From Takakia lepidozioides (Eukaryota; Plantae; Bryophyta), in NCBI GenBank assembly GCA_030704615.1, contig CM060733.1, positions 35,216,001 through 35,280,000 on the forward strand: DNA of 64,000 nucleotides, written 5' to 3'. A model generated the notes under the pieces. It was not told the origin of the DNA. It ran no database searches and saw only the letters and a program-made list of their open reading frames with translations. Made by a program: the position numbers and the translations under genes. Below are positions 192 through 59,299 of the stretch, in pieces (position 1 is the stretch's first letter; the number at the start of each line of letters is the position of its first letter).

Positions 192-1064
192 GCGACAAGG
201 TTCAGGTGTGGTGGGTTCGCATTCGGCGTGGGCCTTAACCATGCGTTTATGGACGGCATCGCATTCATACAGTTCCTACATGCTTGGGCTGCTATAGTGC
301 GTGGAGACAGTACCCCTTTGAGTGCTCCATTCTTAGACCGTACAATCTTTCGCCCACGAACTCCACGTCAGATTGACTTTCCACACCATGAATATGACGA
401 GATGGATCTGGCAGAAAATGTCTTGGGTGATGATTTTGTATACAACACTTTCCATTTCACCCGTGAAACCCTCACAGAGTTAAGACAACAAATATTGGGA
501 CAGCCTGGGGGATATGTGAGCAAGTGCTCCACTTTTGAGACGCTCGCAGCCCATGTTTGGCGCGCGCGCACGAAAGCACTTGGAATGGAGCCATCCCAAG
601 AAACCAGACTCCTCGTGGCAGTTGACGTTCGTTCAAAGTTTTCTCCGCCCGTTCCGTCCGACTATGTTGGTAACTCATCTTATGCAGCTTGCGCTATGAC
701 CACAGCTGATGAGCTCCTATCCAAGCCTCTGTCTTATGCAGTGGGCCTTATACAAGAAGGGATTGCTTTGATCACAGACAAATACTTGAGATCCGTACTT
801 GATTACATGGAGGACGTAAAGAAGAGGCCAACTTCGGTCAATTACTCATTTGCAATTTCCGACTGGTCCCGATTGCCGTACTATGAGCTTGACCTTGGGT
901 GGGGAAAGCCATTTTACAATGGACCTCTCACTCGAGGCCTGCCGCCTGAGGCAGTTTACTTTACATTGCCAGATGGAAGTGAGGGGGAAAAGAAAAATTT
1001 GAAAGTGCTGATCGGACTCCCTCCGAGAGCTATGGAGAAGTTTATAGAGGCAATACGTATTTGA
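192..1064 (+). CDS. BAHD acyltransferase, final exon (5' exon lies left of the window)
   Basis: After the acceptor cag at 189-191 the frame reads ATRFRCGGFAFGVGLNHAFMDG, giving the catalytic HxxxDG motif at the conserved BAHD intron position. DLGWG (DFGWG motif) lies near the C-terminus. The frame is open to the stop at 1064. Confidence 0.93.
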   Translation, partial: ATRFRCGGFAFGVGLNHAFMDGIAFIQFLHAWAAIVRGDSTPLSAPFLDRTIFRPRTPRQIDFPHHEYDEMDLAENVLGDDFVYNTFHFTRETLTELRQQILGQPGGYVSKCSTFETLAAHVWRARTKALGMEPSQETRLLVAVDVRSKFSPPVPSDYVGNSSYAACAMTTADELLSKPLSYAVGLIQEGIALITDKYLRSVLDYMEDVKKRPTSVNYSFAISDWSRLPYYELDLGWGKPFYNGPLTRGLPPEAVYFTLPDGSEGEKKNLKVLIGLPPRAMEKFIEAIRI

Positions 1065-1806
1065 ATTGCAGCTCGTCTTTAGTTACTAATCACTTACTAC
1101 CATATCGTAGAAAAAGGCGTGTATCTCGCAGCTGGGATATGTCGAGAGCATCTTGTAAATGCAGTAGCACGCACAGACATAGCACGTCGTGTAGAATCAT
1201 GAGAGCACTGAGAGAATGCTAGCATGTGGCATTCTCTCATGAGTGTATGACTCTCATGCAGTCAGTAGCAGACTCTCATTCATTAGCAGTCAGTGGTTGC
1301 TAAGAGGCTCTACTCTGAAACTTCCTGCCCAAGAAATCTTTGTATCTCTCTAGTAGATTTGTGACCTGTGACACTCTTCAACACATGAATGTACAAAATG
1401 TGCCAAGAACATGAGCTATTATTATGCAGACCGTGACAAGTTTATGACCATTTGCTCATAGATCTCGAAAGACTCTCGATCATCGCCTTCCATGACACCA
1501 TATTTCATTGAGCCATATTGTTGAAAAATTCTATCACCCTGGACCTTGCTACTTACAGGAGCCCATTTTGCTTGAACAGCACATGCTTAATATGGATAAT
1601 GTCAGTCTTTCCCTCACAGAAAACTGCATAGCACTTTCTCACATGACACCCCAGACATTGCGCAAGTGGCAAAATTACTAGATCCAAGAAGGAACTTAGT
1701 ACTAACTATTGCATGATGTGGCGGTAATTTGTTTGATCCGTCCTAGTAAACTTGGGATTATGGAAGGAGCCACAAGCAAGGTCCTCTGCAGTCAAGGTCC
1801 TCTGCG

Positions 1807-4800
1807 CTACAGGCATCTCTTTGCAATTCTCAAGAGCAGCCCCTTTTTCAGACGTGGGAAGAAGGGGTAGGCGGTGATTTCCTCATTGGGGTCGACAAGT
1901 GACCATTGTAAGCGTCTAACCAGTTGATCCACAAACACCAACATCGCCAACCGCGCCAACTCATAGCCAGGGCAGCTGTGTATACCTCCTCCAAAGGGTA
2001 TAAACGTGTACTGAGGAGGTCCCGTACCTTCGAATCGGGAGGGGTCAAAGTTGCGTGGTTCAGGAAAGTACTCCGGGGCCATGTTGGAGCGATGTGATGA
2101 AAACATCACCTGCTAAACACAACAAACTGATGATTAAGATCTCTCGCATCAGAAATGAAGCTTTCCTCAATCGAGAATTGTAAATCTATGAGCTATTTTG
2201 GGCCTAGTCCTCAGAAAGCGTGAGGAGCATAATCATGCGAGTTACTGTGATATCCGACAGTGCTGATTGTTTTGGACGAGTTATTGACCACTTGAACTGA
2301 TAAGGTTAAGTGGTTTTGATCGATGAAGCCCATGACAAAAGAGTGCTTGGACCATTGGAGCCCAATATTGGGAATTAGATGCTAGTGGGTGGATCTGAGC
2401 GGGATGTACCTTCCACCCCTTGGGAATTGTAAAGCCATCGAACTCAAAATCGGTAATAGCCTCCCGAAAGAGGAGTGGCACCACTGGTACTGTGCGCATA
2501 CTTTCTTGGATAACGCGCCATGTGTACTTCATCTGCCTTGTGTCTGTCCAGTTCAGTACTGCTCCAGGTTCCCTCGCTGCCTCAATCTGTCTTAGCTCTG
2601 GAAATTCATACATTTAATCAGTAAGCAGTTCTACTGGAAAGAATGTACTCATAAGACGTTGTTTCCCGTACCCTTGTGGTCATTGACCCAGCGCCCAGTT
2701 TGAGCGGAACACAAAGAGACAGAAACTACCTTTGTCAGGGGCTGATGCTGATAGTATGACTTACCTTGGAACAGACAATTGATCCGAGTTTTCCAGAGAT
2801 CCTCTAAAAATCCCTTTACACAAGCATCGATCTGCTGTGTACGATTTGCCCAATAACTAGGCCCCAAAAGGGCCAGAGCTTTTGGGTCAGCCTTGAGATT
2901 TTCAAAGTTGGTAAACAGAGGTACAGGCACAAATCCCTTGATGGATTAGAAGAGGGCGTCTCTCTGGTGAGTACCCAGGACAATGAATCAGAAAATGAAT
3001 TTTGTCTTCAGGTTGCCCACACCACAGGCACTTGCAATCCCCTCTTCCTCTCTGCATCTGTTTGCTGTTTAAAGGTAGGCTGTATTGAGAGAGTGGGTAA
3101 ACCCTTGAGGTAGGCAACAGACATGGCTTTGGACACTACAGCCTCTAAGTCAGATTTTTATGCAGCGGGTCAGGACTTGCGGACTTAAGATTCAGATTCT
3201 TTGAGAATCTCTTGTACCCTCTTCCGCCAGGACTTAGCCTGTTTGACAGGCCCATGATCCTGCTTCCAAGATATAAAGTCGATTAACTTAGGGTATCTGA
3301 TATTAGTCATACGTTGCAGCTGACCCCACCATCTGACCTTGAATGCTTAAGGGAGGGGAGGGATGCCAAACTCACCCCGAACAGCCACATTAGCTGTTTT
3401 GGAACATGCTGACATGCACTCCTTAAGCACCCCACTTGCATGGATTCTACAGACTTAGCCTGGTTGGAGTTATCAATCCATACTGCAGATGCTTACTCAA
3501 GGCAGAACTGACTTCAGAGAAAGAGAAGACGAAGGTCAACTCCTGCTGAAGCAAGTCGTAAGCCGAGTAGAAAGTGAAGAGAGATGATTTGATAGCTAGA
3601 GTAACTTGTTTCACTTCTTTCTTAACTAAGCTTATATTATGAGAGTTCGCTGGTATACTAGAGACTTCATGATTCTGTATTGAGACTGAGCTCAGCCTGT
3701 AAGCACCATCGAAAGCGTCAAGATTCTATAGTTGGGAGGTGAGCTTTTTCAGTATACTTCTCATCTTTCTAATCAATTTGCTTGTCGTAAAAGCCTTCAG
3801 ATTTTTTGGCTTTGTTAAAATTAGGGCTTCCCTGACAGGAATTTTCCCTGGCACGTGATTACAGGTTTTTGCCCCGGGACGGGGCTGTAATCTCAGATTA
3901 TGGAATCTGTCCCCCATATTTTATGGATCTATTATTCTTAATATAGGGCAGACGATTTTCAAACTTGGGCAGCGATTGTTGTAGTACGTGACGATGAAAC
4001 CCTGGTGGCAACGCAGAGGAGAAACGGGCAGTATCGAAAACGGGCAACTTCGTTTTTTACGTAAGAGGTAAAGCCCTCGCCCTTGGACTTTCCTGGATTT
4101 GAGGCGCCTGTCCCGAGGGCAGGGGTCGAAAATCCAGGAAAGTCCTCGGGCAGCTTTACCTCTTACTAATATCAATGATGTCATAGGAAAGGTACTTGGG
4201 ACAATGTGGCATGAGATGAAGGCTACCTTTCAAAACCTCGTTCAAGCAGGTCGGATTATCAGCCAAGAGGCGCAACGTCAAGGAAAGGGAGGCGGCAGTG
4301 GTCTCGTGGCCAGCAAACATGAGGACGACGAGGTTGTCTAGGATGGCAGTCTCGGTGAGGAACTGTCCATTCTCGTCCGGCGTCGTCAGGAGCACTGACA
4401 GAAGGTCTTGAGGTGGCGATGCAAGTTTGTCTTCGAGTTCCTGCCACGGTACAGATCATCCATGGTGATAACAATACTTTCAAGAACAATCACTGATCTC
4501 TTGAAAGAACCAAGGTAATAAATATCCAGCAGGGTCTTCAGCAACTAAGATAATCTTCGGAAGTCTAAATTCACCCCTGACTGCCATGTGTTGCCAAGAT
4601 CTCATATAAATCGGTCATCCAACTAATGAGGTTGAGTTGCAATATGTAGCAAGCGGGAAATTATATGGTGGATTCCACTTTGAGGTTCTCTTGTTACCTG
4701 GCGCCTTCTTGTCATGATGGCGCTCAGGCCACTGAGGAGGATCTTACGAGCGCGTTTAGCTTTCCAGAAACGAGTGCCCGGGATATCAAAGGGAAAGTCC

Positions 4801-6321
4801 ATAAGGCCATCCACCAAAGTAATGAATGCATCCAAAAGATTGTTGAGTTCAGGGCCCTCCTTTAAGCTCAAGAAGAGATCGCATGCCGAAACAAATGCAA
4901 ATCGTTTAATGCACTCAGATCCTGTCACTTGGTCTTTATTCTCCCAATGCTTGGATATGTGGGCAGCTGCAAATACCTCCATTCTTGGCACAAAGCTCTG
5001 GATCGATTCAGGATTGAGGAAGGTCATGATGATGCGGCGGTTGCGTCTGTGCAATCTCCCCACAGTTGAGATTAGTTCAAAGTAGCAGCATTGCGATCAC
5101 CTGTGAGTCTAACTTTCAGGAATTCTTATTGTGGGTCATATTGTCTCGCAATATTGGCAAGGTCGAGCACAGCCTGTTGTGTATGAAGTTGTTGACTTCC
5201 TGCATGCCAGTCTAACTTGTCTAAGTAGAGCAGTGATCATCATACCACACGCCGCCATGTGGTGTGTACACAGACATGTTGCAAATTCGAGACTAACTGA
5301 ACACTGTTGAAATAGGTAACAGTTCCAAGGAAGTTCTTAAGCAAATCGTTCACTTGCTTTGGCAGGTGTCCAGGCTATTTGTTTTTTCCAAGTACACCCA
5401 AGCCACTGGCACTGGGCCATTGAGAGTGAAAATTAACCCCCTTTTGGAGCCATTGAGGCACGTCCAGGGCTATTATTCTGAACACTTCACAAGTTTGTCC
5501 ATTTCAAAGCAATTAAAGGAGTATTATTTACCTGTAAGAGTCGGGCGTCCCCAAGGTATAGCTTTCTTTCCCAAGAAGGATGGAAAATGAGCTGGGCCAG
5601 CAATTTCGAACCAGTTTGTTCTCATTCGCAAACACGAACTTGTTTCCAGCAGGCGCGGGCAAGCACACAGTCTTGTCACCCATTAGCGAGGTTTTGAACA
5701 CCACTCCATATTTCTTCTCCCGAGCCTGCGACCGGATGAAACCATGAGATCATTTGGCAGAATCTCATATCACAGCTCTGAAATCTACGTTGAGACTTCG
5801 AAATTGACCTATTGTTTCAGCACCGTATCTCACTCATACTACGTGGATGATCGATAAGTGGATCCAAAGAATTGGCAAAATATTGGGCACCACGAATCTC
5901 AGAATCAGCTGCTCGTGGCAGAACATGCCGTACACGGTTTCTCAGAACATAGCTCAGCCGCATACAACAAGACCTTCATCATTCGAGTTCATGTATGTCT
6001 AGTCTAAGCATCTAAACTAGCTGCATGATCTAGTGGCTTCATTGGCATTGCCTGAAAGAAATCTTGGGGTCTGTAGATGCGCATCGCTGAGAGGTAGCTA
6101 AGTGTCTCCCCAATGACTGGAAGCCCCAATCGACCCGGTGGAAGTGGGGGCCGGCCTTTGAGCCGATTCTTCTCTGATTGCGAAGGAATAATCCAGAAGA
6201 CCAGCCACAACACCAGAGTCCCAAATAGCAGTGCAAAGAGTGAACCCAACGTTGCCCCATGTCTGATCACTGTTCCCGTATACACTTGCCACGGTCTGTC
6301 GATCCCAACCAAGTTTGTCAT
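1807..6321 (-). CDS. Cytochrome P450, CYP85 clan (CYP716/725/728-like), 6 exons, ~505 aa
   Basis: Exons 6321-6052, 5725-5532, 5046-4698, 4440-4227, 2597-2410 and 2109-1807 total 1518 nt with consistent phases. Motifs: N-terminal TM helix, [17 protein letters not shown]-helix AGHETT, K-helix ESMR, FDPSRF and heme motif [10 protein letters not shown]. Family assignment is by eye. Confidence 0.92.
2636..3500 (-). mobile_element. Decayed LINE 3' portion inside P450 intron 4
   Basis: Minus-strand remnants [16 protein letters not shown] and a C-terminal Cys/His motif [17 protein letters not shown] typical of LINE ORF2 ends. The 3' end matches copies at 35.7, 52.2 and 55.0 kb. Confidence 0.6.
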
Positions 6322-6737
6322 CCCTACTGTTAGGTGCCAATGGAGCTCGGACTGGTACTGTGAACCAGTTCTTTTCTGTGCAGAGTCAATCTTTGTAAAT
6401 CAAGCGAACAGCTCTTTGAAATTTTGGAGTTGGGTCCTATCACGGTTCCTGTCACTGTTGAGAAATGGATTGGACTTGTGCTAAGATTGAAATCTAGTGA
6501 GCAACGTGATACCTACCCACTGAGCTCTCTATTAGAATCTACTCAAAAACTTCATGCCCTGCAGCTTCGCGTCTCAGGCTGTGCACTTGAACTAATAAAA
6601 TTGAATGTCTATGTGTGACATACCAGAACTATAGCGAGCTGAGGAACTCCAAAGCCACAAAGGAGGCTCACCTAAGTGCTCAGAAAGCGGGCTGTCAGAT
6701 CTTGCATATGCGAGGAACCCTGCCTGGGTATTAACTA

Positions 6738-7146
6738 TTAACCCCTAAAGCGCCGGGAGTGTTTTTGGTGGGCCACCTTAAAAATGGGACCCACCCTCAT
6801 GGATCAGGCCGTATCTGCTAGCAGGAGTTCATCCAGAAAATGAACCTTACCAACTGGCAAGCTACCTAACTACATGCAAGTGGGAAGAAATGACCCTCAC
6901 GTTTGGGAGATTATAATAAATTACCATGGTGGATTTGAAAACTCCAAGCAAATCTTGAAGGAAAAATGAGCTTTGACCAAGCAAATTTGCCCTCACAATG
7001 ATATTTCCTGAGGCCCGGACCACCTCAATCAGAAAGAGAAGAGGGTTACAGGTGTCCTCATGAAATTGGACCTCTTTGGATCAGCACCTGGCGAAAATCG
7101 TCAATTTTATTTTTTTAAATAAAGGGAAACAGAGCCTGGGGGTTAA
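6738..7146. mobile_element. Possible non-autonomous piggyBac-like element upstream of the P450
   Basis: Bounded by TTAA-CCCC (6738) and GGGGG-TTAA (7146). The terminal match extends only ~4 bp beyond TTAA. Confidence 0.25.
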
Positions 7147-8816
7147 TTAATCTGGCCACTTCCCAGAGATCAAGTTTAACAAAGATTTTAACTGAATGAT
7201 AAGTATGTCTTAATTATTAATTTTCCAATGAGAAAGATAGGGGGACGGTGGTTGGTGTGAATGGTGTACAACCTCCAAGGCACGGCCTTCATGGGGATTC
7301 TCTGATATTCAGCTTCTTCTGCTTAGGGATGTTGTGCAGAGGGAAGGCGTGAATGTGGAGCAACAGCCAGTCCAATAGGATCAGTCAAGGTAGATTGCAG
7401 GAAGCTGTACAATACCAATGGCTGCCTGCAAGGGTTTCAAACCTGATCTGCTATGAAGATATGATGAATATGAAGGCAGAGCTTTGCAAAAGAGAGCAGC
7501 TCAACTTCAAACAAAGAAGATAGAAAGCAAGACACAAGAAAAACATCAATCGTGAGGTTTTCGGATATAGAAAGCGAGAACATTAGGTGATTTCTTGTAT
7601 GTATGCGGAAAGAATTGGATGTCCAGTCTAGTTTGGTTCAACCACTTGGGAAAGCAGACATAACATTCGTATTATCGACCTATAGATAAGTTCCGGCCCC
7701 CCTTGTGATGTAATGAAAAGGCAGTGTATAGGGAGCGTATAGGCCTTCCGAGTTTATTTTCTTAGAAGCAAAGAATGTGGAGTAGTTCAAGAAGACTATT
7801 CAAAAGAGCTGCTGTCACAGGAACGTTTTAACTTCCCCAGTTCATTTAAGTTCAGCTAATTTGATTACATGTTCTTGTGTTTTTGGAAGTGGGGTGCGTG
7901 CACTCAATTGCACAGTGCAGATGCGAAGATGGTGACACATCATGCACGATGACTACTCTTGTATGTTCGTTTCCTTTTTGTGCCCCTCTCTCGTGCTGTA
8001 GCTACTGGCAAGGCTACATCAAGGGATGTTGAATGAGTACAATTGGCTAAATGGAGGTTGATGAATGCACACTGCACACTCCAGCTTCAAGTCGGTATTG
8101 GGTACCAGCCTCTCATGAGAGCTCGTCACAGTAAGGGGTGGCACTGACCATATTGACAAGGTGTCTTTGATAATTGTGACATTTTTAACAAATGCATGGT
8201 ACATGCTTAGCCCTGCCCTTTATCATCTCAGAGTAAGGTTGCTATTTTAAGGTTGCTATTCCAAATAATAGTGTCCATCATATAATTGTAATCCTGTCAA
8301 TTTGGGATCAATCTATCCCATACAAATTTGAGACTATAGCCTTGAATCCGTCCAGTCAGTCTTCCATTGTTTATTTTCATGCAAAGAAAGTAGAGATTAA
8401 TTCTGTATTGCTACCCACATGTCACTCATTCTATGAAATGCCCATATGTTGTTTCGGTAACTACTATGACCCACTGCCCATACTTTTTCTCTTAACTTGA
8501 CACTAAAAGCAGCAAACAGTAACAAGCACATATATTCATCCAACACCAAAATATAAGTATTCCATCTAGACACAATCATCCAGCAACATTGGTCCCTTGA
8601 AAGCTGGTCCGTAACTTGTAAAATTATAAGTGGGGAGAAACCATTGCGTATTCTCTGCATGTCTAGGTATTGATTCACAAATGAAAATTGTACTAAGTAC
8701 TACATACCCAATACTACAATAACGTATGAGTTGCGTATGAAAATACTACTCCAAACCCAACACTAGTTGCAGTACCACGTCCAAGAATTCAACCCTCATA
8801 TGTCGTATTTGGGAAC

Positions 8817-10445
8817 TCAAATTCTATCCGAAGAGAATGAACTCGAGAACTCGAGGAGTCTACCGTTCATGCACGTCCCATTGCATGCAGTCTTAACACC
8901 CAAATTAGGGTTGTGATATCCACTGCGGAGCGCAGCCAGGGCATATGCAGTTGTCGTGATCTCGTTCCCGAACCAGCTTTTGGGGTCGTTGTAGGAATAG
9001 AAGGGACAGACATCCCATGAACCATCCACGTTCTGCAACCGTGCCAGCTGCTTCCGATCGCTGGTGTTCCCGATGCCGCACAACTCGCAAGCTATCAGTC
9101 TCATTGCCAGGGCAAGAGCGCTCCCTTGCATTCCAACATGCTCGCTCACCCGCTGCGCCAGTAGTTCCAGAAAGCCTGTCTTTTGGAAGTGCTCCTTGAA
9201 CTTGTGAGCAAGGCCAGCAAGCTGACACAAAAAGGTCTCTGGCAGGGGATAGTATATACTCCCCCGCAAATATGCTCTGCTCTTGAGCAAGTTGTACAGA
9301 AACTGTTCGGTCTTCTTCACAGGTGCGGGTCGGCCTGCTAGGTGAAATAGATAACAGATGCTGGCCTGACTGACCGCATCTATCCTTGGACGCGAGGGGT
9401 CGAAGTACGCCTGGAAAATGCCATCCTCGGTCCTCATATCTAGCATCTTGTCCAATACGGCGTTGATTTGTTTCAAATCTACTTTCGAGAACTTGTACAA
9501 GGCAACTAGCGCCACTGCGGTTGTGTCGAGATCATCTGGGAAAGCTTTGTGGGTGGCCGCGTTGGTATTAACATCTCTTTGGACCAGCCTTTCCTCTGGA
9601 GGGAAAAAGTTAAACGTCCCGGTTGCTGGAGCTGTATGCATGGGAAGGAAGTCTGGGTCCTCTAGCAGATCCGCCATCACAAAGTGGTCGAAGTGGACTG
9701 GGACTCGAAGGCCATCGGACGTAAGAGAGGGACATCTATCAACTGATCCTCTCCTCCGCAACAAATAATCAGCAGCGGCTAACAGCCTCTCTTCATCAGT
9801 GCGAAGATGGTACAATACAAGGTTGACCGTCACCTTGACGTCTTCCGATCCGACAAGAACACCAGTGAAGCCCAAGGACTCAGCAGCAACCACATTCTGT
9901 AGTGTGTCGTCGATGAAAATGGTTTCTGATGCTTTGCAACCCGTCTCGTGCAAAACGTGCTGGAAATAACCGAAGTTGGGTTTGCGAATCCCAACGGCAG
10001 CGGAATAGAACACTCTATCAAACTTCTGGAAAAGATCTGGGAATCTCGCGAGGAGGTAGTCGTAGTCTTCTCTAGCAGCATTAGTCATGCAGAAGAGTTT
10101 GAGCTTGCCCGTAGAAGCTAGAGCATCTACCAGTTGGAGAATTGCACTAACAGGACGGAGAGAGCCTCTCGCTCTGTCGACGAATGTTTGAACATCTTCT
10201 GCATTGAAACCGTTGTCGAGGGACACCCTGTGCAAGGTTTCCGCCCAGGACAGCTTGCCCTCAATATATTGGAACCAAACATGGCTGCGCAGTATACGCT
10301 TGAATCGAACGGGGTGCAGCGGCGTGCCGTGACTGTTGTCTAAGTTGGGCACCAGCAGAACTCCGCCGATGTCGAAGCATACACTTTTGAATGGACTGTT
10401 GCTGCAGCTGAGAAATGGGAAAAGCTCGGTATTCAGACTGCCCAT
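8817..10445 (-). CDS. Intronless HAD-like hydrolase / class II terpene cyclase fusion (drimenol/albicanol synthase type; AstC/DrtB-like), 542 aa
   Basis: N-terminal HAD domain: FDIGGVL, TN, RKP, FIDDTLQNV. C-terminal class II cyclase domain: FPDDLDTT (DxDTT), YFDPSRPRID, RGSIYY and QW motif QNVDGSW. Single uninterrupted ORF. Confidence 0.9.
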   Translation of the reverse strand: MGSLNTELFPFLSCSNSPFKSVCFDIGGVLLVPNLDNSHGTPLHPVRFKRILRSHVWFQYIEGKLSWAETLHRVSLDNGFNAEDVQTFVDRARGSLRPVSAILQLVDALASTGKLKLFCMTNAAREDYDYLLARFPDLFQKFDRVFYSAAVGIRKPNFGYFQHVLHETGCKASETIFIDDTLQNVVAAESLGFTGVLVGSEDVKVTVNLVLYHLRTDEERLLAAADYLLRRRGSVDRCPSLTSDGLRVPVHFDHFVMADLLEDPDFLPMHTAPATGTFNFFPPEERLVQRDVNTNAATHKAFPDDLDTTAVALVALYKFSKVDLKQINAVLDKMLDMRTEDGIFQAYFDPSRPRIDAVSQASICYLFHLAGRPAPVKKTEQFLYNLLKSRAYLRGSIYYPLPETFLCQLAGLAHKFKEHFQKTGFLELLAQRVSEHVGMQGSALALAMRLIACELCGIGNTSDRKQLARLQNVDGSWDVCPFYSYNDPKSWFGNEITTTAYALAALRSGYHNPNLGVKTACNGTCMNGRLLEFSSSFSSDRI

Positions 10446-10512
10446 GCTTCAAGGAGGCCACGGCCGTGCAATCGAATGGGTCCGACCTCCTGCTGAGTAG
10501 TATCTTCAAACC

Positions 10513-11139: not shown

Positions 11140-11400
11140 CCGGCCGCAAGGGATCGAGGCATTGTGGAACAACTTGCCTAGGCGGCGAACTAGGCTTATC
11201 CATCCATTAAGCCTAGTCTATGGAGAGTTGATGGGACCCGCAAGGGATTGTGGAACATCTTGCCTACGGAGAGAACTAGGCTTATCCATCCATTAAGCCT
11301 AGTCTATGGAGAGTTGATAGGCATGATTCATGAAACCGTGGAAAAAGTATAAAACAACAACCCCATACAATCAGCAAGGACAGAGCCTCTTGTGGCGGAG
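11140..11400 (+). repeat. Dispersed repeat with internal tandem duplication and hairpin
   Basis: actaggcttatccatccattaagcctagtctatggagagttgat occurs twice (about 11189 and 11275). A reverse-complement copy lies at 38048-38225. Confidence 0.7.
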
Positions 11401-12280: not shown

Positions 12281-12535
12281 TGCGTTCCACTAGGAAGGTG
12301 GACACATTTGTGACACCAAGGGTGGGTTGAACCCACAACCACTTCCGAGGTGGTATGTGCATTCCGCTAGGAAGGTGGACACCTTTGTGACTCCAAGGGT
12401 GGGTTGAACCCACAACCACTTCCGAGGTGGTATGTGCGTTCCGTTAGGAAGGTGGACACCTTTGTGACACCAAGGATGGGTTGAACCCACAACCACTTCC
12501 GAGGTGGTATGTGCCCATTACCACTGGGCTACACC
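12281..12535 (-). repeat. Three tandem 77-bp units of a tRNA-derived SINE-like head
   Basis: Units start at 12281, 12358 and 12435 (period 77). The minus strand shows an A-box TGTAGCCCAGTGG once and a B-box GGTTCAACCC in every unit. A related single copy lies at 40531-40605. Confidence 0.75.
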
Positions 12536-12740: not shown

Positions 12741-13239
12741 AATGGCGGATCTGCATTTCAATGTTCAATTTTCACAAGCCGCATCAATCAATATCAACAG
12801 ACCCAAATAACCTTACATTCACTATATGAACTTTCAAGCATCCACAGTGGGATTGGATCTTGGTGGGTTAAGGGTAGCTTTTGACAATATTCATGTAAGT
12901 TCATCAAGGGCTCCATCCAAAGCCACACCACGAGAAACAAACAAACATGTCCAAATTTAAGATGCTGAACAAACTTGTGCACATGGCTGCCCCTCTCATC
13001 AAGCTCATTAAAATTCGTATCCACTTCCATCTTCAAGCTTTGGTGAAGCTCCACCACCCAAACCTAGAATTAGGACAGTACTCTGATTTCCATCCATTGT
13101 CACCAGAATCAGTCAAAAATCACCCCTTCAGTCAAGTGCAATTGTGGGCTAACTTCCTCCCTATGCCGGGTAGACCCCTCTATCAGGAAATGGTGGATGG
13201 TCTGAGTGGCTACACAAATCAATGAATGAAGCAAGACAC

Positions 13240-15770
13240 CATATCCTGCGATCATCGCATTCCACGACACCACATTTCATTCAGCCATATTGTCAAATCC
13301 TCCCTTTGCATCCTCATTGCACTCACATTTGGTACAATTCCAGCTTTGATGATGTCACCATGAACCTCTTTGTCCTTTTCCAGGGCTGCCAGGCTTGCAC
13401 ACGCATTGCAAACGCATACAAACGTGATGTGGTCGGGCTTCACCCCTTCCCCCATGCCTCCATCCCGCACACCTGCTATGCATATCCTACAAGCATGGCG
13501 TTCCATGACACCAAATCTCGTTCAGCCATATTGTTGAACACTCCCTCCACATCCTCGATGCTCCCACATTTGGCATACATGTTTACGAGGGTATTGTTCA
13601 GAATCACATCTGGTACAATTCCAACTTCGGCGATGCAACCATGCATCTCTTTGCCCTTTTCCAAGGCTGCCAGGCTTGCACACGCATTGCAAACACAAAC
13701 AAATCTGATGTGGTTGGGCTTCACCCCTTTGCGCAGAATCTGCTCATAGGTCTCAAAAGCATTCCTACCACACCCATGCTTAGTAAATCCTGCCAACATT
13801 ATACTCCACGTGATCAAGATCGTTGAGGCATTCTGTTGAATGCTTCCGCATCTTTTGCTCATAGGTCCCCAAAGCCTCCATCCCACACCCATGTTGGGCA
13901 TATCCTGTGATCATCGCATTCCACGACACCACATCCCGTTCAGCCATGTTGTCAAATACTCTCTTTGCAACCTTCATGCTCCCGCATTTCGCATACATGT
14001 CAACAAGGCTATTGTTCAAAATCAGATTTGGTACAAGTCCAGCTTTCATATGTCAGCATAGACCTCTTTGCCGTTTTCTAGGGCTGCCAGTCTCGCACAA
14101 GCCTTGAGAATGCAAACAAATGTGACCTGATCGGGCATCACCCCTTGCTGTATCAGTTGATCATATGTCTCGAAGGCATTCCTACCACAACCATGCTTGG
14201 TATATCCTGCCACCATATTGTTGAACACTAGACAGGCCTCCCTTACACTCCAATATTTGGCATATGTCATGTTAACAAGGGCAGTCTCCCAATTAAGGTA
14301 TGACGAAATTCCAGTTTTGATAATGTCAGCATGGATATCTTTGCCCTTCTCCAGGGCCACCATGCTGGCACCAACATTGAGAACACAGATGAATGTGGCT
14401 TGCACACGCATTACAAATGCACACAAACGTGATGTGGTCGGGCTTCCCCCCTTCCCCCATCATGGACCTCTTTGCCCTTTTCCAGGGCTGCCAGGCTTGC
14501 ACATGCATTGCAAACGCTCACAAACGTGATGTGGTTGCATTTCACCCCTTCCCCCACCATTTGCTCATAGGTATGATCCAAGGCCTCCATCCCGCGCCCC
14601 TGCTATGCATACCCTGCAAGCATGGCGTTCCATGACACCAAATCTCGTTCAGCCATATTGTTGAACACTCCCTCCGCATCCTCAATGCTCCCACATTTGG
14701 CATACATGTCCACGAGGGTATTGTTCAGAATCACATCTTTACAATTCTAGCTTTGGCAATGCAACCATGCACCTCTTTGCCCTTTTCCAGGGCTGCCAGG
14801 CTTGCACACGCACTGCAAACGCACACAAATGTGATGTGATCGCGCTTCACCCCTGCCCCCATCATTTTGCTCATAGGTCTCCAAGTCCTCCATCCCACGC
14901 CCTGTTGTGCATATCCTGCAAGCATCACATTCCACGACAACAAATCTCGTTCAGCCATATTGTTGAACACTCCCTCTGCATCCTCAATGCTCCCACATTT
15001 GGCATACATGTCCACCAAGGCAGTGTTCAGGATCACACCTGGTACAGTTCCAGCTTTGGCGATGCAACCATGCACCTCTTTGCCCTTTACCAGGGCTGCC
15101 AGGCTTGCACACGCATTACAAACGCACACAAACGTGATGTGGTCGGGCTTCACCCCTTCCCCCATCATTTGCTCATAGGTCTCCAAAGCCTCCATCCCAC
15201 GCCCCTGTTGTGCATACCCTGCAAGCATCGCGTTCCACGACATCACATCTTGTTCAGCCATTTGAAAACTCCCTTCGCATCCTTCATGCACCCACATTTG
15301 GCATACATGTCCACCAGGGCAGTGTTCAGGATGACATCTGGTACAAATCCAGCTTTGACGTTGTCACCATGGACCTCTTTCCCCTTTTCCAGAGCTCCTA
15401 GGCTTGCACACGCATTGCAAACACAAACAAATATGTTGCGGTTGGGCTTCACCCCTTTGCACATCAATATCTTTCGCGCATCCACCAAACTCCCACACTT
15501 GGCATACATATGGACAAGGCTAGTTCCTACATAAACATCTGATTCAAATCCAGCTTTGACAATGTGGGCATGAAGCCCCTTGCCCTGCCCTAGAGCTGCT
15601 GGGCTGGCACACCTTTTGAGGATGCAAATGAGAGTGACCTTGTCGGGCTCTACACCTTCTTGTGGCATTTGCCCAAAGAGTTCAAATGCATCTTCACCAT
15701 GCCCTTGCTCAGTACATCCTGCAATTATTGCAGTCCAAGAGACCACGTCTCATTTCGGCATTTTGGCATC
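13240..15770 (-). pseudogene. Frameshifted PLS-class pentatricopeptide repeat (PPR) array
   Basis: Repeated P-L-S motifs (DVVSWNAMLAGYAQQG, KPDHITFVCVCNACASLAALEKGKEVH, NTALVDMYAKCGSIEDA) are split across several frames. No E/DYW domain was seen. Confidence 0.88.
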
Positions 15771-16669
15771 AAATGCCAAAATCCATGCCTCTGCACAAAT
15801 CATGCATTCATCTTTTCCCTTGCTGCTAGCAACTGACAATGATAACCTAGGAAACACCCAATCACACTAGTTCCTATGCTGAATTGCGTCTGCTACTCTC
15901 TGTCATCTAACAGGGATTCAACTTTTTGCCTTGGTTGTCCCACCATTGACTGGGGTCAACAAAGTATTTATTCCACACCTTCTCTCTATTACCTGTTTTC
16001 GGATACTTTCCTGTTATCACATTAGCAGTATCATGTCAAAGTCACTCCAAACCCAATTCACTCAACCAGCTAACTTGCAGAATTCAGCATGGAAATTTAG
16101 GGCTGACTTTGACAAGAGGGAAAAACAGGGTGAAATGTGTTGAAGAAGGTGCCTGAACATTAGCAGTGCCTTGTTCTATCATTTGTGCTGCTGCCGCTGC
16201 TGTTTCCAGTTGACCATCTACCCAACGACCTAACTTGCAGAATTCAATATGCATCTCAGGGCCGAGTCTGATGAGAGGGCAAAACAGGCTGAAATAGGTC
16301 GAAGAAGAAGGTGCCCTCACCATGTCATTGTCCTTGATCTTGTGGCATGATCGATGGAGGATTTGACCATCAACCCAAAAGGACCCCTTGTGTGTGCTGC
16401 TTGTGTCAGGTGATGTCGGATTGGTCTATGAGAACCAACACGGTGCAGCTGAGCAGGCATAGATTGAAACACAACCTACTAAGACCGAGCTGACTCCCAA
16501 GAACCTTGTAAACATAATCAGGAAGAATATCAAATCATGATACTAACAGGAGCTAAGAGCCCACATGTGCAGGATGGACAAACTTCTTCACATCGTACAT
16601 TAAGAAAAAGCCACACCTTGCGATTGCGGTTGTCCCACCATCGTGAGTGACATTATGAATGACATATGG

Positions 16670-24659: not shown

Positions 24660-26020
24660 TGGTGCGTTTGGGAGCTCTGGAAAAGGGGAAAGAGGTCCAT
24701 GGTGACATCATCAGTGTTGAATTGTACCATACGTCATTCTAAACACTGCGCTGGTGGACATGTATGCCAAATGTGGGTCATGCATTAAGGATGTGAGGAG
24801 AGTTTTCAATACTATGGCTGAATGAGATGTGGTGTAATGGAACGCGATGCTTGCAGGGTATGCACAGCAGGACACGTGATATGGAGGCTTTGGAGACCTA
24901 TGATCAAATGATGGGGGAAAGGGTGAAGCCCGACCACATCACGTTTGTGTGCATTTGCAATGCGTGTGCAAGCCTAGCAGCTCTAGAAAAGGGCAGATAA
25001 CAGAGATAATGAGAAGCTCTGGAATGAACATGTTTCTGACCGCAGTCAAGGGTGGAACAATCGAGGCAAAAAGGTGAATGCTTGTTGGAAGTGCAAGTCA
25101 GCATAGGAACTAGTATGATAATTAGGGTTGCGGTATTTGTTAGAACAAATCTAGGCTATCATTGTCAGCTACTAGCAGTGGCATAAGAACTAGTGTGATT
25201 GGGTTTTTCCTAGAGCAGATCTAGGCTGTCGCTGTCAGCCGCTAGCAGCAAGGCAATGATGAATGAATGATTTGTACAGAGGCATGGATAGCTAAAGGAG
25301 CAGGGATAGAATGTGGGTCCAGATTCATCCAAGAGGGCCAGATTTCAAGCACAAGATTACCTACCTGTGGATCAAAAGCTGCAAGAAACCTGCATGGGTA
25401 GATGGTTAATTGAAGGCAACAGCTGCAGTGGCACAACTGATAAAATCAGGCACCTCAACCATGACCACAGCTTCTGGAAGAGGATCAAGAGAGGGAGTCC
25501 ACAATGCCTCTTATGCCACTGCTGGGCATGTGAAGATGCTTTGTGAGACAGACTGACTGAAAGAGGCTCTACAGACTTTAAACCAAGTAGGCATTTCAGC
25601 AGATTTAGATACGTACGTCTGTCTCTTGCATAAGTGCATCAAGATGAAAGGCCTGAAAGCTGGAAAGCAGGTGCACACTCACATTATCCAAAGTGGTTAC
25701 ACTAAATATTTTTCTACTCAACACCCTTGTCAACATGTATATTAAGTGCTTAAGCATCATGGATGCTCACCAAGTGTTCAACAGAATGCCTCAACGATCT
25801 TTGATCACGTGGAATATGATGTTGGCAGGATGACAGCCGAGGGAGTTTTCAACACTATGGCTAAATGAGATGTGGTGTGGTGGAACGCGATGCTTGTAGG
25901 GTATGCACAACAAGGGCGCGAGATGGAGGCTTTGGAGACCTATGATCAAATGATGGGGGAAGGGGTGAAGCCCGACCACATCACGTTTGTGTGCATTTAC
26001 AGTGCGTGTGCAAGCCTGGC
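24660..26020 (+). pseudogene. PLS-PPR fragments (24660-24995 and 25530-26020), inverted paralogues of 13-17 kb
   Basis: WNAMLVGYAQQGREMEALETYDQMMGEGVKPDHITFVC; contains in-frame stops. Non-coding flanks match 15.8-17.1 kb in reverse. Confidence 0.8.
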
Positions 26021-27819
26021 ATGTCTTGCCTTGAGGGCAAGGGGTCCGAACACAAGAGGAGCTGCCTCTGTGGTGGGGGCAGTGACAACAATAGGTACGG
26101 GGGCTGAAGCACCCTTGAGTGCCCAAGGCACTCAAGGAGGTGGAGGTGCTCACTAGGTGGAGCCCCGCACACCGGGTTGGGGTGGGGGTGGTTCCACGAG
26201 GGGTGGTGGTAGCTTAGTGGGTCTTAGTGGGGTGGCGTAGGACTCATCATGGGGCGGAGACCTTGTGGTGGGAGTCGTGGGGAGTCTTGGGACTCATCAC
26301 GGTCCATTGGGGCCGTGGTGGGTAGACCAAGACTCACCACGACTCATCATCAGGAGTCAAGGTTCTTCGTGGTGGTTCGCCATAAAAGGATGGTGTTGTT
26401 TGTGCACATTGTCCATGAATTGTTAAGTTATTTATGGATCTATTCAAGTCTTACGAAAAGATAGACCATGCTACATTTTGATACATTGAGTAGTTCTGGA
26501 GTGGGAATGTTGCTTAGAACCATTTTTCGGTCATTTATGCCTTCTCTAGAACGGGTTCTCATGGGAGATATCGAGAATCTGTGAGTCGTGGTATGTCGAT
26601 CATTTTTGTTAGGTGTTGTTTTATTTCAGTGGGCAATATTTTATTTGCGGGCATGTTGGAAATTAGAACTGTACGGCAAGTGTTCCCATGTGTTGCTGAC
26701 CTATATGGCATGATGATCATTCGATGAAAAATTGTCATATATTGCATCCGTTATGTCTTGATAGGTAACTTCTTGAATTTCTTCATTTGTAATAGTATGT
26801 TTGTTGTCAATTTCCGACATTGATATGGTTGTATGAATATACACTGCAATCCGAACAACAACTTTGGATTTGCATGAGTGTCATGCAGGTGGCCAATGTG
26901 ACAAGTGAGCTGGTCATTGGTTGGGAATATACTAGTAGTCTTAGATACAAATAATAAAACGACGTTCATCCATTTCCTAGCATGCAAGGACTTAGTATGA
27001 AACCACGTCTAAATGGATGAAACAGATGGATGGAATGGACATAACAAATGTCATCTGCAATGACTGAAAAGGGTTAATCAATCCGCGAAAATAGGCTCCT
27101 CCCGCGGAAATAGGCCCTGCAAGTTTGGAATTCTATGTTGACATGGTGTGAGCCTATGCTGGGCTCACGGGCTCCTAGGCTCATAGGCTCATGCCTCCAG
27201 GCTCGCGGAATAGCAACCTTGTCTGGTAAAAACACCTACATGTGAGCGCGACCTTGAACAGACCCCTATTTTTGCGTATGAAAGTGACTACAGAGGTCCT
27301 TGAATGGATGGACAGAATCCAGTGGTTTACTTAAGGTCTACCAATGGCCAGAATTGACTACAAATAGGGTGGTTTTACGACTCAACGTGTATACATCCAT
27401 GTACTTATTGGATTTGTAACAACACCGTTATTAACAAATCAAATAGATTACTGTAATCATAATTTGCACTTAATTAATCACCTAAAGAGTAGGCATAGGC
27501 CAGATTTGGGGCAGATTATGTTTCAAAATACCATGAGGGCTGCTCCATTCAAACACAATGGCTGCTCCATTTAAAATGGACCCGTTGACCATTCAAAGTT
27601 TCAAACTCTAAAACCAAGTATAAACGCGGGGCCCACATGTGCAAAAGGCCCAGCGTGCGATCCATAAAAGTTCTAGGACGGAAGTAATTTAAATATTTTT
27701 AGATATGGCAAGTATATTAAGACTTGTTTTGGGTGCATGTATGGATAAGCTATGGACTTAGGGCAGTTTAGTTTTCATTTACTCGGGCACGTTGTCACAC
27801 ACTATCATGGGTCAGCATA

Positions 27820-30322: not shown

Positions 30323-33300
30323 ATGGGATCCAGATTCAATCCGGTGTCGCTCGACTTTGATAATGATTCCGACGATTGTTCTGTGCTCGATTATTCCTCT
30401 CGTGAGGAGGGCTTGATCACCAACGCCAGAGAGACGCTTTCGGCTGAGCAGAAAAAAATTGTCGAGCTGGTCCAGGATGGCAGGGTAAGAGAGATTAACA
30501 GGGTCTTATTTGACAGTAGTTTAGGGGCTGAGGGTCGTTACAGCCCGGACTTTGGCGCATGAAATGTCTCTCTGCACGGCTAAGAAGCTATTTCGTTTTC
30601 ATGTTCCCGTGTGTTTCTTTACCATAATTCAATCAGCACGAGGGGGAAGGCCTTTTCCTAGAGAGAGGGAATGTAGAAGGAGTGGCATAGTTTGTGCTTC
30701 AGACACTCGGAGTCTTTAGGACTTCCGGGGGAATATATGTGAGGAAGAGTATTAGTAGTCATGTTCTCTTTCGTCTTTGAAAATTGCAACAGTGCAGTTC
30801 CTCGCTTGCCGAACCACTATCATGCACACCATTGTCGCTGAAAGCTGTCATCTTCAGGTTCCATGAATATAGATGTAACTGGCTAAAAAGATGGCAATGA
30901 ACGTGGACAGGCTCCTGGAACCTGAAGATCCCGTCCCCTTATTGAAGCTTGAGTTGGCACTCTTAATGGAAGCATAGCCTTGGACCAGACGTTCAATTGA
31001 TCATAGCTCATGACATCTTTTTCTTCCTGAGCGATGAAGAGAGCCGAAATCAGGTCATAAGGTAGGGTTTAAGCTAAAATAGAGTTTGACTTCAAACCCT
31101 GAATCCTTGTTTGTATTCTCTTAGTGGGTCTGTCGTGTGTATCTAAGCAATTGTGTGAACTTGTACAGAACGTTTTCTTCTCTGGCCCTGGTGGCACAGG
31201 CAAGACATTCGTGCTTCAGCATATCCTTCAAATACTGAAGGAGAAGTTTCACACAGATCACATCAAGTCTGATCTCCTTCCTGGCAAGATCCATCCTAAA
31301 AAGCAGAAGTACCAGTGCGATTGTTATAGTTGCAGTGTGGCAGTTACAGCATCCACAGGCATCGCAGGTGGTGTGCTGTCTGAATGCATTTTTTGCCACT
31401 ATTCTATTTCCCAAGTTGATTGAGTAGACTGCATAATTGTTCTTATGTAGTACATATCGCAAAATGCACAAGACCACGTGGTTCTTAACTCTATGTGATG
31501 GGTCATGACTAATCCTGCACACTCTGAGACATTGGAGATAAGGTATATCAGACAAAATGATTATTGGTAATAATGTGGTTTAGATCTGCTTGTCTGCCTC
31601 ATAACCTTGTTCATTTCGGTGTTGCAGCACTGGAGATTGAAGGCACTACTCTGCATTCGGCAGCAGGAATAGGTATCCCACGACGTTTTCAAGATTTTAA
31701 TCGCATGTTTGAGCACAAAATGAGGATCAAGTGGCGCAACCTGAGGGTTCTGATTGTTGACGAGATATCAATGATCAGCGCTGAATTTCTTGAGTACTTG
31801 GAGCAGACAATATGTAGAGTTCGTGGGCCATCAGAACCATTTGGGTCATCAAAACCATTTGGCGGCCTTCAGGTAGCAACATATCAAATGTTTCTTTGTC
31901 AGCTCTGGACATAACTAGGTGTACTAATGATCAAAATTGCAGGATTTCACCTTCAGTCCATGTTAGCCATTGCGTGGCTGGGAGCATGATCATTACACAG
32001 GCATATTCTCTCCAGTCCATGGCAGTAAAGCAGTACAATCTTTTGATGAGAAAGAAAGAAAGAAAGATTGGCAAAAAGAAAGAAATTCATTCGGCCCAAG
32101 TACTGTTGTTTTCCTGTGTTGCTCTGGGTTGGCCTTCTCAGTTTTGTTTTGGGTAGAGTGAGACAGGCACAATCGTCCTGCTAGATAACGAGTTGAGTTG
32201 ACTGTGAAGTCTTGGTCCTTTGGTGCTGGCTAGTAGTCTTTGGTTTCCCTCTGAATTCAGCTGGTTGCTGTGTGGAGAAGGTGGTTACTCAACCGCTCTC
32301 CACTCGTCTGTTTGGGCTTGTTGTGTTTCTTTCACCCCTCAGGGTGGGCTTCCAATGGCTTGTCGAGGCTTTGTCCATGGTTATTGATTTTTTTAGTTTG
32401 CTCTAGAGTGTTTCCCCCTTTCCTCCCAAAAACTGATGTCCATGGGAACAAAACAAGAAAAGTGGGGTCCCCCAAAAACCAGCTACCTCAACCAGAAGAC
32501 TACAATTCAACTTTAAGAGATGTTCTAAGGTGGAGAGCCTCATGACGACATCTCTGATCCTCATAATGGCACACCTCTGTCAGCGCTTGGCTGTCACTAA
32601 GAAAAGAAACAGACGTATTATGTCCATGGGAGGTACGTAGTGCATGCGGCTGTGAGAGAACACTGTTTTAGGTATTGGACTGTGGGGGAGGGGGGGAGCA
32701 ATAGCATCCTACTCCAGTAGCACGATCTTCAAACATGAAGTTGATTGAGAAGTTACTTATTGTCCACTAAAGCATTTTGCCATATCTTCAATTTGATTAT
32801 GGCCCATAATCACATCCAAGCAGCAGGGTATTCTTGAACTGGGTGCAAGAAATGTAGTGACAAGCAATTCCCGATTCTATTCAATGACTATTCTGAGGAA
32901 GTAGCTCTATTTCGAAGACTAATAGCTTGCCATCCTCTCCATCATCCCAACAGTCAGCCATGTGGGTTCCCTTTTTGTTTGCTACAGGTGATTTTTGCTG
33001 GAGACTTTTTCCAGTTGCTTCCAGTACAGGATAAGCCCCCCAATCAGTTTACAAATAAGGGGTTTGCATTTGAGGCACCGGCATGGAACAAAGCAAATTT
33101 GGAGTGCGTCATGTTGAAAACTGTCTTCCGTCAGGTACACATCAAAAAAAAATTCACCTGATTTGGTGAGGCATAATATAACAATCTCTAAAGAATAATT
33201 CTTGCTCCCTACAGAAAGTGTGGAATTTCTTCCCAATTACAGATTTACAGTAACATGGGTGGGTTCAAATCACGCTGCAGGGTGATAGAGAGTTTGTCCA

Positions 33301-58916: not shown

Positions 58917-59299
58917 CGTGGTGAAGTGTCCGTTTGACCTAGTTTGATTTAACATGATTCCTTGTTATGTCTCGCTTTTCCAGGCTTGTGAATTTGCTAC
59001 ATCATTCAATTTGCGCAGAACAAGGTCTTCTTGTGATGCTGTGATAGAGTGCAGGATTTTAGTTAAGGGCAATTTGGCCAACTCTAGCACTGCTTGGGAT
59101 TTTTCCTCAGCCGCAGTGTCGGTTGATCGAGGGGCAATTTGAACTCAAATACGGTGTTCAAAACATGGTGTCCTCTCTTTGTAAAGAAATGCTCACGTGT
59201 ATTTTGACTCTCCGATGTATTCCTGTGATCTAAGGTAAGCTACAACAACAAGCTGTAAACCGCAGGAGGTCTGTCCATTGCAGCAAAAGAGAGGGGAGC

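Follow-up and report, generated by a model that had tools for sequence, protein, structure and literature searches.

A candidate three-gene cluster for a drimane-type sesquiterpenoid ester around a HAD-type cyclase in Takakia lepidozioides

Described drimane systems and the layout of the locus

The drt genes of Aspergillus calidoustus combine scaffold formation by a HAD-type cyclase (HAD-TC), the drimenol cyclase DrtB, with oxidation by the P450 DrtD and acyl transfer by DrtE, an alpha/beta-hydrolase that loads polyketides from DrtA and accepts cinnamoyl-CoA (PMC8596746). The astellolide cluster of Aspergillus oryzae (AstC, AstI/K, four P450s, AstA, and AstG) has a cyclase of the same family; its acetyltransferase AstG belongs to the Transferase family, and the aryl ester is made by an NRPS (PMC5024094). 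The drimenol/albicanol synthases AsDMS from Aquimarina and AncC from basidiomycetes have been characterised as well (PMC12365925, PMC12232559), and the bacterial AsDMS cluster contains an FPPS and a regulator, without P450 or BAHD. In plants, a terpene cluster on a microbial-type synthase is already known from Marchantia, where MpMTPSL2-MpCPT5 joins a class I MTPSL with a cis-prenyltransferase at a bidirectional promoter to yield monoterpenes, without tailoring enzymes (10.64898/2026.07.16.738752).

The flowering-plant drimenol synthases VoTPS3 and PhDS likely share their scaffold with the enzyme described here, but have the fold of class I plant TPS and are not related to HAD-TCs. The 2025-2026 papers that we compared place HAD-type cyclases in bacteria and fungi only and plant drimenol synthases among class I TPS, and drimanes and drimane esters have long been known from liverworts and ferns. 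Our literature search brought up nothing on HAD-TCs or HAD-TC clusters from plants, and we found the cyclase/oxidase/acyltransferase layout on a HAD-TC described in fungi only. We know of no report of such a HAD-TC cluster in plants. Industry patents reportedly cover HAD-like albicanol/drimenol synthases from Dryopteris fragrans and Bazzania, and the enzyme class may therefore be known in plants outside journals.

Here, we analysed a 64,000-nucleotide stretch of Takakia lepidozioides DNA (the window), in which a cyclase, a P450, and a BAHD acyltransferase, three non-homologous enzyme genes, are closely linked at 192-10445 (Table 1). The preliminary description had named these enzyme classes, with which domains, motifs, and nearest relatives agree, and had given distances of ~740 bp and ~2.5 kb, which we measured as 742 bp between the convergent BAHD and P450 stops and 2495 bp from the P450 ATG to the cyclase stop. 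It had also seen no recognisable gene between members of the trio, and indeed no Pfam match came from 47 stop-free stretches lying between the genes or next to them up to 13 kb. From 13 to 31 kb rightward, the only features are an SH3 domain from a retroelement and degraded PPR fragments; a fourth pathway gene was sought between or right of the trio and not found up to 31 kb. Compared to drt, the locus shares a HAD-TC scaffold enzyme, oxidation, and acyl transfer, whereas its acyltransferase is a plant BAHD, its P450 belongs to the plant CYP85 clan, and the window contains neither a PKS nor an oxidoreductase. With assumed family fractions of ~0.8% of genes for P450s and ~0.2% for BAHDs, both would be nearest neighbours by chance at ~1e-5 to 1e-4 per cyclase locus, a figure for one cyclase locus alone that leaves the look-elsewhere effect over many terpene-synthase loci uncounted.

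Table 1. Features of the cyclase, P450, and BAHD locus (positions in the window).
Feature	Position	Strand	Details
BAHD acyltransferase, last exon	192..1064	+	290 aa; HxxxD = HAFMD, DFGWG = DLGWG
Gap between convergent stops	1065..1806	no strand	fully covered by RNA contigs (X5 record 13, X6 record 17)
P450 exon 6	1807..2109	-	PSRF, heme-binding stretch (10 residues), stop
P450 exon 5	2410..2597	-	ESMR, K helix
High-copy repeat inside P450 intron 4	2640..3500	no strand	DNA depth >100,000 versus ~40 for single-copy contigs
P450 exon 4	4227..4440	-	I-helix AGHETT
P450 exon 3	4698..5046	-	
P450 exon 2	5532..5725	-	
P450 exon 1	6052..6321	-	hydrophobic membrane anchor, proline-rich hinge, GC donor
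HAD-TCβ cyclase	8817..10445	-	intronless ORF, 542 aa

The cyclase and its likely product

In the cyclase, a class II cyclase beta-domain follows an N-terminal HAD domain within one fused protein; as judged from its sequence, the enzyme is a true HAD-TCβ relative of AsDMS and AstC. These two are its closest solved relatives (AstC, E 8.5e-58; AsDMS, E 3e-51), a fold search placed AsDMS on top, and Atlas clusters named drimenol cyclase DrtB matched with a score of 0.97. It shares the two-domain fold and catalytic residues of AsDMS and AncC, but is ~25% identical to them, belongs to a separate plant clade, and differs at the acid-activating Asn and in its selectivity residues. Mutagenesis of AsDMS has shown D43, G45, N139, K171, D195, and D196, and likewise D331, D333, Y373, R378, Y426, and Y427, to be essential (PMC12365925); in the alignment, the first set corresponds to D25, G27, N122, K155, D179, and D180 and the second to D305, D307, Y347, R352, Y398, and Y399. 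While the HAD domain of AstC is dead and requires AstI/AstK (PMC5024094), the cyclase retains the full phosphatase set (D25, G27, T121, N122, K155, D179, D180, and N184), with the same DXG as AsDMS. The DxDTT acid/base motif, the supporting Tyr, and the phosphate-binding Tyr/Arg are also present (D305, D307, T308, Y347, R352, R354, Y398, and Y399).

Ser362 of the cyclase occupies the position of an Asn hydrogen-bonded to the catalytic Asp (N324 in AstC), which is Asn in 68, Ser in 5, and His in 4 of 80 homologues; the N324A exchange abolished AstC activity (PMC13244436). The pocket residues F281/Y483/Y485/F492 differ from those of AsDMS (Y/F/A/F), AncC (F/Y/F/A), and AstC (F/Y/Y/I). F281 takes the place of AsDMS Y319, of which the alanine mutant is dead, and is also F in AncC and AstC. 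Given a Ser at the Asn essential in AstC and selectivity residues unlike those of any characterised enzyme, a drimane is the likely rather than the established product.

The locus had been viewed as a microbial-type cyclase joined to native tailoring enzymes. The class assignment holds, but a fresh import does not: in our tree, the cyclase groups with Riccia and fern proteins (support 100/98) and is a long-standing gene of seed-free plants, microbial in type and not recently transferred. Given that its subfamily is common to Riccia and ferns, a cluster would have joined long-resident genes. The missing introns and the mostly fungal and bacterial distribution of HAD-TCs might suggest microbial contamination or mis-assembly, which we nevertheless find hardly credible: next to the tree, GC/GC3 (0.51/0.58) equals that of the P450, the stretch is present in three studies of one organism, and the Riccia homologues also align as a single uninterrupted segment. 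Tree, GC, and multi-study presence likewise exclude recent horizontal transfer. The HAD core begins near residue 20, so that a plastid transit peptide would have no space, in keeping with the use of cytosolic FPP. A search for related loci returned nothing but stand-alone HAD phosphatases from genome contigs, and two short loci from metagenome contigs.

Synteny in related genomes, put forward earlier as a check on the cluster, was not found within 10 kb in Riccia sorocarpa or Adiantum nelumboides. Neither a P450 nor a BAHD lies that close to the Riccia sorocarpa cyclase homologues, and the trio linkage is likewise absent over this distance in Adiantum nelumboides; contigs of the closest relatives are shorter than 5 kb, and the comparison comprises these two species.

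The P450, the BAHD, and their expression

The P450 model spans six exons on the minus strand and encodes 505 aa without internal stop. In RNA runs X5 and X6, each of the five introns was recovered as a joint; DNA run X1 showed none of these joints. Intron 1 is of the GC-AG type, and its joint (5723-6050) was seen in both RNA runs. We considered a pseudogene, which is excluded by the intact frame and by splicing in the two RNA runs. Four exons searched singly gave taxadiene 5-alpha-hydroxylase as top or tied top match, followed by CYP120/CYP90B1. The enzyme, previously called CYP716-like, is thus, by exon-wise searches, a CYP85-clan member of the CYP716/725 branch. Partial copies of the intron 4 repeat occur at other places in the window.

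Of the BAHD, the window contains the last exon only, matching Pfam Transferase positions 139-429 of 434. The claim of three intact genes therefore stands for the complete frames of cyclase and P450, while that of the BAHD, with its 5' part left of the window, cannot be read from the window by itself. RNA contigs match the exon from ~189-192 and are spliced onto off-window 5' sequence, 719 nt of it in X5 and 252 nt in X6. All top matches of the BAHD carry the name omega-hydroxypalmitate O-feruloyl transferase (43-45% identity), and in a tree without liverwort reference it forms a long branch that falls into none of the supported FHT groups. Its nearest named kin thus agree with one half of the earlier concern, that the BAHD might be a cutin/suberin feruloyl transferase in a conserved block, but the long branch leaves its grouping loose, and no conserved block was found. 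This kinship points to a hydroxycinnamoyl donor. Seed-plant FHT/ASFT and MeHFT from the liverwort Marchantia emarginata are the nearest named type, with hydroxycinnamoyl-CoA donors and primary-alcohol acceptors; MeHFT esterifies primary alcohols with hydroxycinnamoyl-CoAs, although terpene acceptors are not reported for it (PMC6150198), and it is a possible rather than an established orthologue of the BAHD. In Bazzania, an albicanyl(drimenyl)-caffeate chemotype has been described (PMC6100190). Given that ω-hydroxyacid/alcohol feruloyl transferases are the nearest named kin of the BAHD, a drimenyl or albicanyl hydroxycinnamate would be the likeliest ester.

The P450 and the BAHD exon are both transcribed in two RNA studies (X5 and X6; contigs only), and the covered gap between their stops probably represents overlapping 3' UTRs. 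For 4200-10500, the word share in the RNA runs was 0.50 and 0.44, compared to an expectation of at most 0.19 for the P450 mRNA and 0.40-0.47 for P450 plus cyclase; being above that of the P450 alone, it implies cyclase expression. These data support three working transcription units. Promoter words common to the genes remained at chance level (42 shared 8-mers versus a median of 40). Paralogues of the BAHD and the P450, ~10-12% diverged, are present at single-copy depth in DNA, and that of the BAHD is also found in RNA.

The proposed pathway, its alternatives, and its meaning

Conserved residues and family chemistry suggest that the cytosolic HAD-TCβ would protonate farnesyl diphosphate via D307 of DDLDTT to give a drimenyl/albicanyl-type diphosphate, from which the HAD domain (D25, T121, N122, K155, D179, and D180) would remove the phosphates stepwise to yield a C11 primary alcohol. 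The ER-anchored CYP85-clan P450 may then hydroxylate or further oxidise the bicyclic skeleton, and the FHT-like BAHD may acylate the primary alcohol from a CoA ester, with caffeoyl, feruloyl, or coumaroyl as the most probable group. Of the scaffold-oxidise-acylate idea in the preliminary description, the enzyme classes, the geometry, and the logic of cyclisation, oxidation, and acylation hold, with the drimane scaffold likely only. We give about an even chance to the three genes forming a specialised-metabolism cluster that makes a drimane-type sesquiterpenoid ester. More tentatively, a complete drimane hydroxycinnamate-ester cluster may have been assembled and then duplicated, with native tailoring genes, a P450 of the CYP85 clan and a BAHD repurposed from the cuticle type, later joining the old seed-free-plant HAD-TCβ gene; it would converge on fungal drt/ast with non-homologous tailoring, and the cyclase-P450 link would recur at several places in the genome.

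The role of the BAHD can also be read otherwise: cyclase and P450 might make an oxidised drimane of the aldehyde or lactone type next to a bystander BAHD that produces cuticular alkyl hydroxycinnamates. The names of its top matches favour this reading, as does the fact that MeHFT itself is just 42-51% identical to seed-plant FHT/ASFT/DCF/FACT (PMC6150198). Given the long branch outside the FHT groups (in the tree lacking a liverwort reference), the transcribed duplicate, and the P450 only 742 bp away, we regard it as unlikely. Quite improbable is a working trio on another scaffold, where the class II product is monocyclic (monocyclofarnesane/striatane-like) or of some other kind and is then oxidised and acylated. 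The unique pocket combination and Ser362 speak for it, one pocket change switches the product among HAD-TC cyclases (PMC12365925, PMC13244436), and monocyclofarnesanes and a sesquiterpene caffeate occur in liverworts; however, the characterised HAD-TCs in the literature we compared all convert FPP to a drimane skeleton.

An equally improbable explanation is that the genes are coincidental neighbours in a repeat-rich region of specialised metabolism, co-copied by segmental duplication and working separately, or with a cyclase weakened by the N-to-S exchange. The genome contains many terpene, P450, and BAHD loci, so that some trios will arise by chance, and co-duplication by itself would account for a second copy; the linkage is not conserved in Riccia, and promoter motifs are not shared above chance. 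Against this stand the very short spacing with no gene in between, three intact and apparently transcribed frames, paralogues retained after ~10% divergence, and chemically compatible functions.

If the proposed cluster is real, it would supply missing genes for the drimane chemistry of bryophytes and ferns, and its product would probably be a defensive sesquiterpene ester from a small assembly line. Together with the Riccia and fern homologues, the locus points to a second drimane route in plants, and a long-standing chemotaxonomic question becomes open to testing on three genes. Seed-free plants, from which very few clusters are listed, would gain one with tailoring enzymes, and the case would cleanly illustrate how plants and fungi converge in cluster logic.

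Gene order of the trio and evidence of transcription

Re-derived from the window sequence, the cyclase, P450 and BAHD acyltransferase genes lie where the preliminary description had put them, and the spacings it gave as ~740 bp and ~2.5 kb measure 742 bp (BAHD-P450) and 2495 bp (P450-cyclase). Its view of three intact genes holds for the cyclase and the P450, whose frames are whole, whereas the BAHD gene is represented in the window by its last exon only. A Pfam search of 47 stop-free stretches between and beside the trio genes returned zero matches, in keeping with the claim that no recognisable gene separates the members. Given that the 13-31 kb part of the window contains only decayed PPR pieces and one retroelement fragment, the cyclase marks the right border of the group.

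Features of the locus and its neighbourhood (window positions)
Feature	Position	Strand	Remarks
BAHD last exon	192-1064	+	Transferase profile positions 139-429 of 434
Cyclase ORF	10445-8817	-	single ORF, 542 aa
Tandem repeat, 86-bp unit	11157-11321		two copies, just upstream of cyclase
Tandem repeat, 77-bp unit	12281-12514		three copies, just upstream of cyclase
PPR-encoding arrays	13000-16000 and about 25000-27000		frameshifted, strong GC skew
PIF1 helicase gene	31564-34613		split
SKP1-like (ASK21-type) ORF	50842-51774		intronless
Helitron-like PIF1 region	59000-64000		AT-rich

X5 and X6, runs from two separate studies, show a splice joint for each of the five P450 introns, intron 1 with its GC donor (GC-AG) among them, and the DNA run X1 does not; X5 and X6 are therefore RNA, and the P450 model (six exons, 505 aa, no internal stops) is right. 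In both RNA runs the BAHD contigs match from about 189-192 onwards and extend into as much as 719 nt of off-window sequence, as expected for the spliced upstream part. RNA contigs also cover the entire gap between the convergent stops (1065-1806), which suggests overlapping 3' UTRs; one X5 contig spanning P450 exons, gap and BAHD exon is most simply explained by overlapping 3' ends of convergent transcripts and is no proof of a single transcript. Contig mapping covered 5,991 bases outside the cyclase, the expression of which was judged by word share. X5 and X6 contain 0.50 and 0.44 of the words of 4200-10500. P450 mRNA accounts for no more than 0.19, whereas P450 and cyclase together should give 0.40-0.47, from which we infer that the cyclase is transcribed. 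The RNA contigs document presence of transcripts, not co-regulation.

Several features of the reads and introns were also recorded. The same BAHD and P450 places are covered in the DNA run both by exact contigs and, at similar depth, by contigs that diverge by about 10-12% (for example 2413-2662, 0 differences, depth 40; 2401-2685, 23 differences, depth 38), and diverged BAHD contigs are present in both RNA runs. An insertion of 27-28 bases relative to the assembly is present at 1474 in both RNA samples. One X6 contig uses an alternative junction (5673-6052, 378 bases skipped) that would shift the P450 frame, and RNA contigs with many differences, probably from a paralogue, cover a part of intron 1, at 5976-6041. 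Intron 4 contains a very high-copy repeat (2640-3500) and a MITE-like hairpin with 35-bp arms (4079-4151).

Class and ancestry of the cyclase

The closest solved relatives of the cyclase are the drimane cyclases AstC (fungal; E 8.5e-58) and AsDMS (from Aquimarina; E 3e-51). AsDMS structures also rank first in a structure search with its predicted model (pLDDT 80, pTM 0.80), and it scores 0.97 with Atlas clusters that bear the name DrtB. Published mutagenesis (PMC12365925, PMC13244436), mapped onto an 80-sequence alignment, reveals a complete phosphatase set (D25, G27, T121, N122, K155, D179, D180) and the cyclization set (D305, D307, T308, Y347, R352, Y398, Y399). Because the whole phosphatase set is kept, the enzyme, unlike AstC, should free the alcohol on its own. 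Architecture and main motifs are thus those of the HAD-TCbeta class, as initially proposed, but one conserved supporting residue differs: Ser362 occupies the position of AstC N324, loss of which abolishes activity (PMC13244436). This column holds Asn in 68 of the 80 homologues, including the nearest relative L004, and Ser in five. Since this residue deviates and activity is a prediction, we regard the enzyme as a relative of the drimane synthases rather than as a proven one. With the HAD core starting at about residue 20, the protein has no evident transit peptide, in line with cytosolic FPP as substrate; neither GPP nor GGPP was used by the bacterial enzymes tested.

The HAD-TC family tree, unrooted and hence silent on the donor lineage, has three clades, one fungal (100/100), one bacterial (97/95) and one (100/98) that unites the window cyclase with Riccia sorocarpa, Adiantum nelumboides, Ceratopteris richardii and several unlabelled assemblies. 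Given this clade, GC and GC3 equal to those of the neighbouring P450, and Riccia homologues aligning as one uninterrupted segment, the cyclase is best read as a long-standing seed-free-plant gene; the same evidence rules out recent import. The liverwort Riccia provides the closest named homologue (49%), so that by this gene the host resembles a liverwort; unlabelled relatives are nearer (67-68%). The closest of these, L004:2138-3347 and L046 (about 67%), have an intron after residue 344 that is missing from the window cyclase and the Riccia genes. In a fern-containing subclade (P0009, P0013, P0014, P0264), the HAD catalytic residues are degenerate, as in AstC, with E for the nucleophile or the DD lost, and these proteins probably release diphosphate in AstC-like fashion. 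The related cyclase L003:255-1792 (run SRR2148099), which a frameshift splits around residue 290-300 and which has Ile in the Asn column, is probably a pseudogene or assembly error.

One HAD-TC inside the plant clade (L006:2935-3195 and P0001, JGI 3300041965), with 54% to the window cyclase, is found beside IS66, integrase and TerB-like pieces on a bacterial-looking contig of 65% GC; the gene itself has a GC of 0.51. Placement with the bacterial HAD-TCs was rejected (AU p 0.0007). The gene may have passed from a plant to a bacterium, may mark a donor lineage, or may sit on a chimeric contig. The two records may lack independence.

A candidate pathway and its alternatives

P450 classification relied on exon-by-exon searches, the joined model serving only for the frame check and comparison with related loci. 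Taxadiene 5-alpha-hydroxylase was the top or tied-top match for all four exons searched singly, followed by CYP120 and CYP90B1, and AGHETT, ESMR, PSRF and heme-binding (10 residues) motifs were found. These matches assign the enzyme to the CYP85 clan and, within it, to the CYP716/725 branch, which is known for terpenoid oxidation; the searches do not fix the family rank CYP716 of the earlier "CYP716-like" label.

The analysis establishes how the genes are built, that the P450 is spliced and the BAHD transcribed, which motifs they carry and where they come from. In the chemistry proposed, the bifunctional cyclase would turn FPP into a drimane-type alcohol, the P450 would oxidize it, and the BAHD would acylate the product, probably by hydroxycinnamoylation, to a defensive ester. 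We give this three-gene pathway about an even chance of being correct. Hydroxycinnamoyl transferases lead the solved-structure matches of the BAHD, and the liverwort enzyme MeHFT, of the same type as its best matches, uses feruloyl-, caffeoyl- or coumaroyl-CoA to esterify primary alcohols (PMC6150198). Drimenol and albicanol are alcohols of this kind, and Bazzania has a recorded albicanyl(drimenyl)-caffeate chemotype (PMC6100190). The same evidence may also suit a cuticle enzyme, so that a working cyclase-P450 pair with the BAHD as bystander is conceivable, if unlikely. The preliminary description had named, as one result that would refute the cluster, a BAHD that groups with conserved cutin/suberin feruloyl transferases in a separately conserved syntenic block: the top matches are indeed named omega-hydroxypalmitate O-feruloyl transferases (43-45%), yet in a tree built without a liverwort reference the BAHD forms a long branch within no supported group.

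A genuine cluster making a C15 skeleton other than drimane is unlikely. It draws on the selectivity positions F281, Y483, Y485 and F492, a combination unlike those of AsDMS, AncC and AstC, because of which the product isomer cannot be predicted from the protein, nor, with lower odds, the skeleton. Chance neighbourhood we judge equally unlikely. Three enzyme genes with such short gaps show the linkage used to define plant clusters; in relatives, no P450 or BAHD lies within 10 kb of either Riccia sorocarpa copy of the cyclase or of the Adiantum copy, which speaks against conserved linkage. An artefact is very improbable.

Recent papers list HAD-TCs from bacteria and fungi only, and our literature search for plant HAD-TCs found no report. 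Patents are said to cover HAD-TC-type enzymes from Dryopteris and Bazzania. A Marchantia cluster that likewise contains a microbial-type terpene synthase (10.64898/2026.07.16.738752) is a precedent for such clusters. As the preliminary description had suggested, the trio would converge on the cyclise-oxidise-acylate logic of the Aspergillus drt and ast clusters: linkage and enzyme classes agree with it, the drimane chemistry is predicted, and, in contrast to the fungal clusters, the tailoring enzymes are plant-type.
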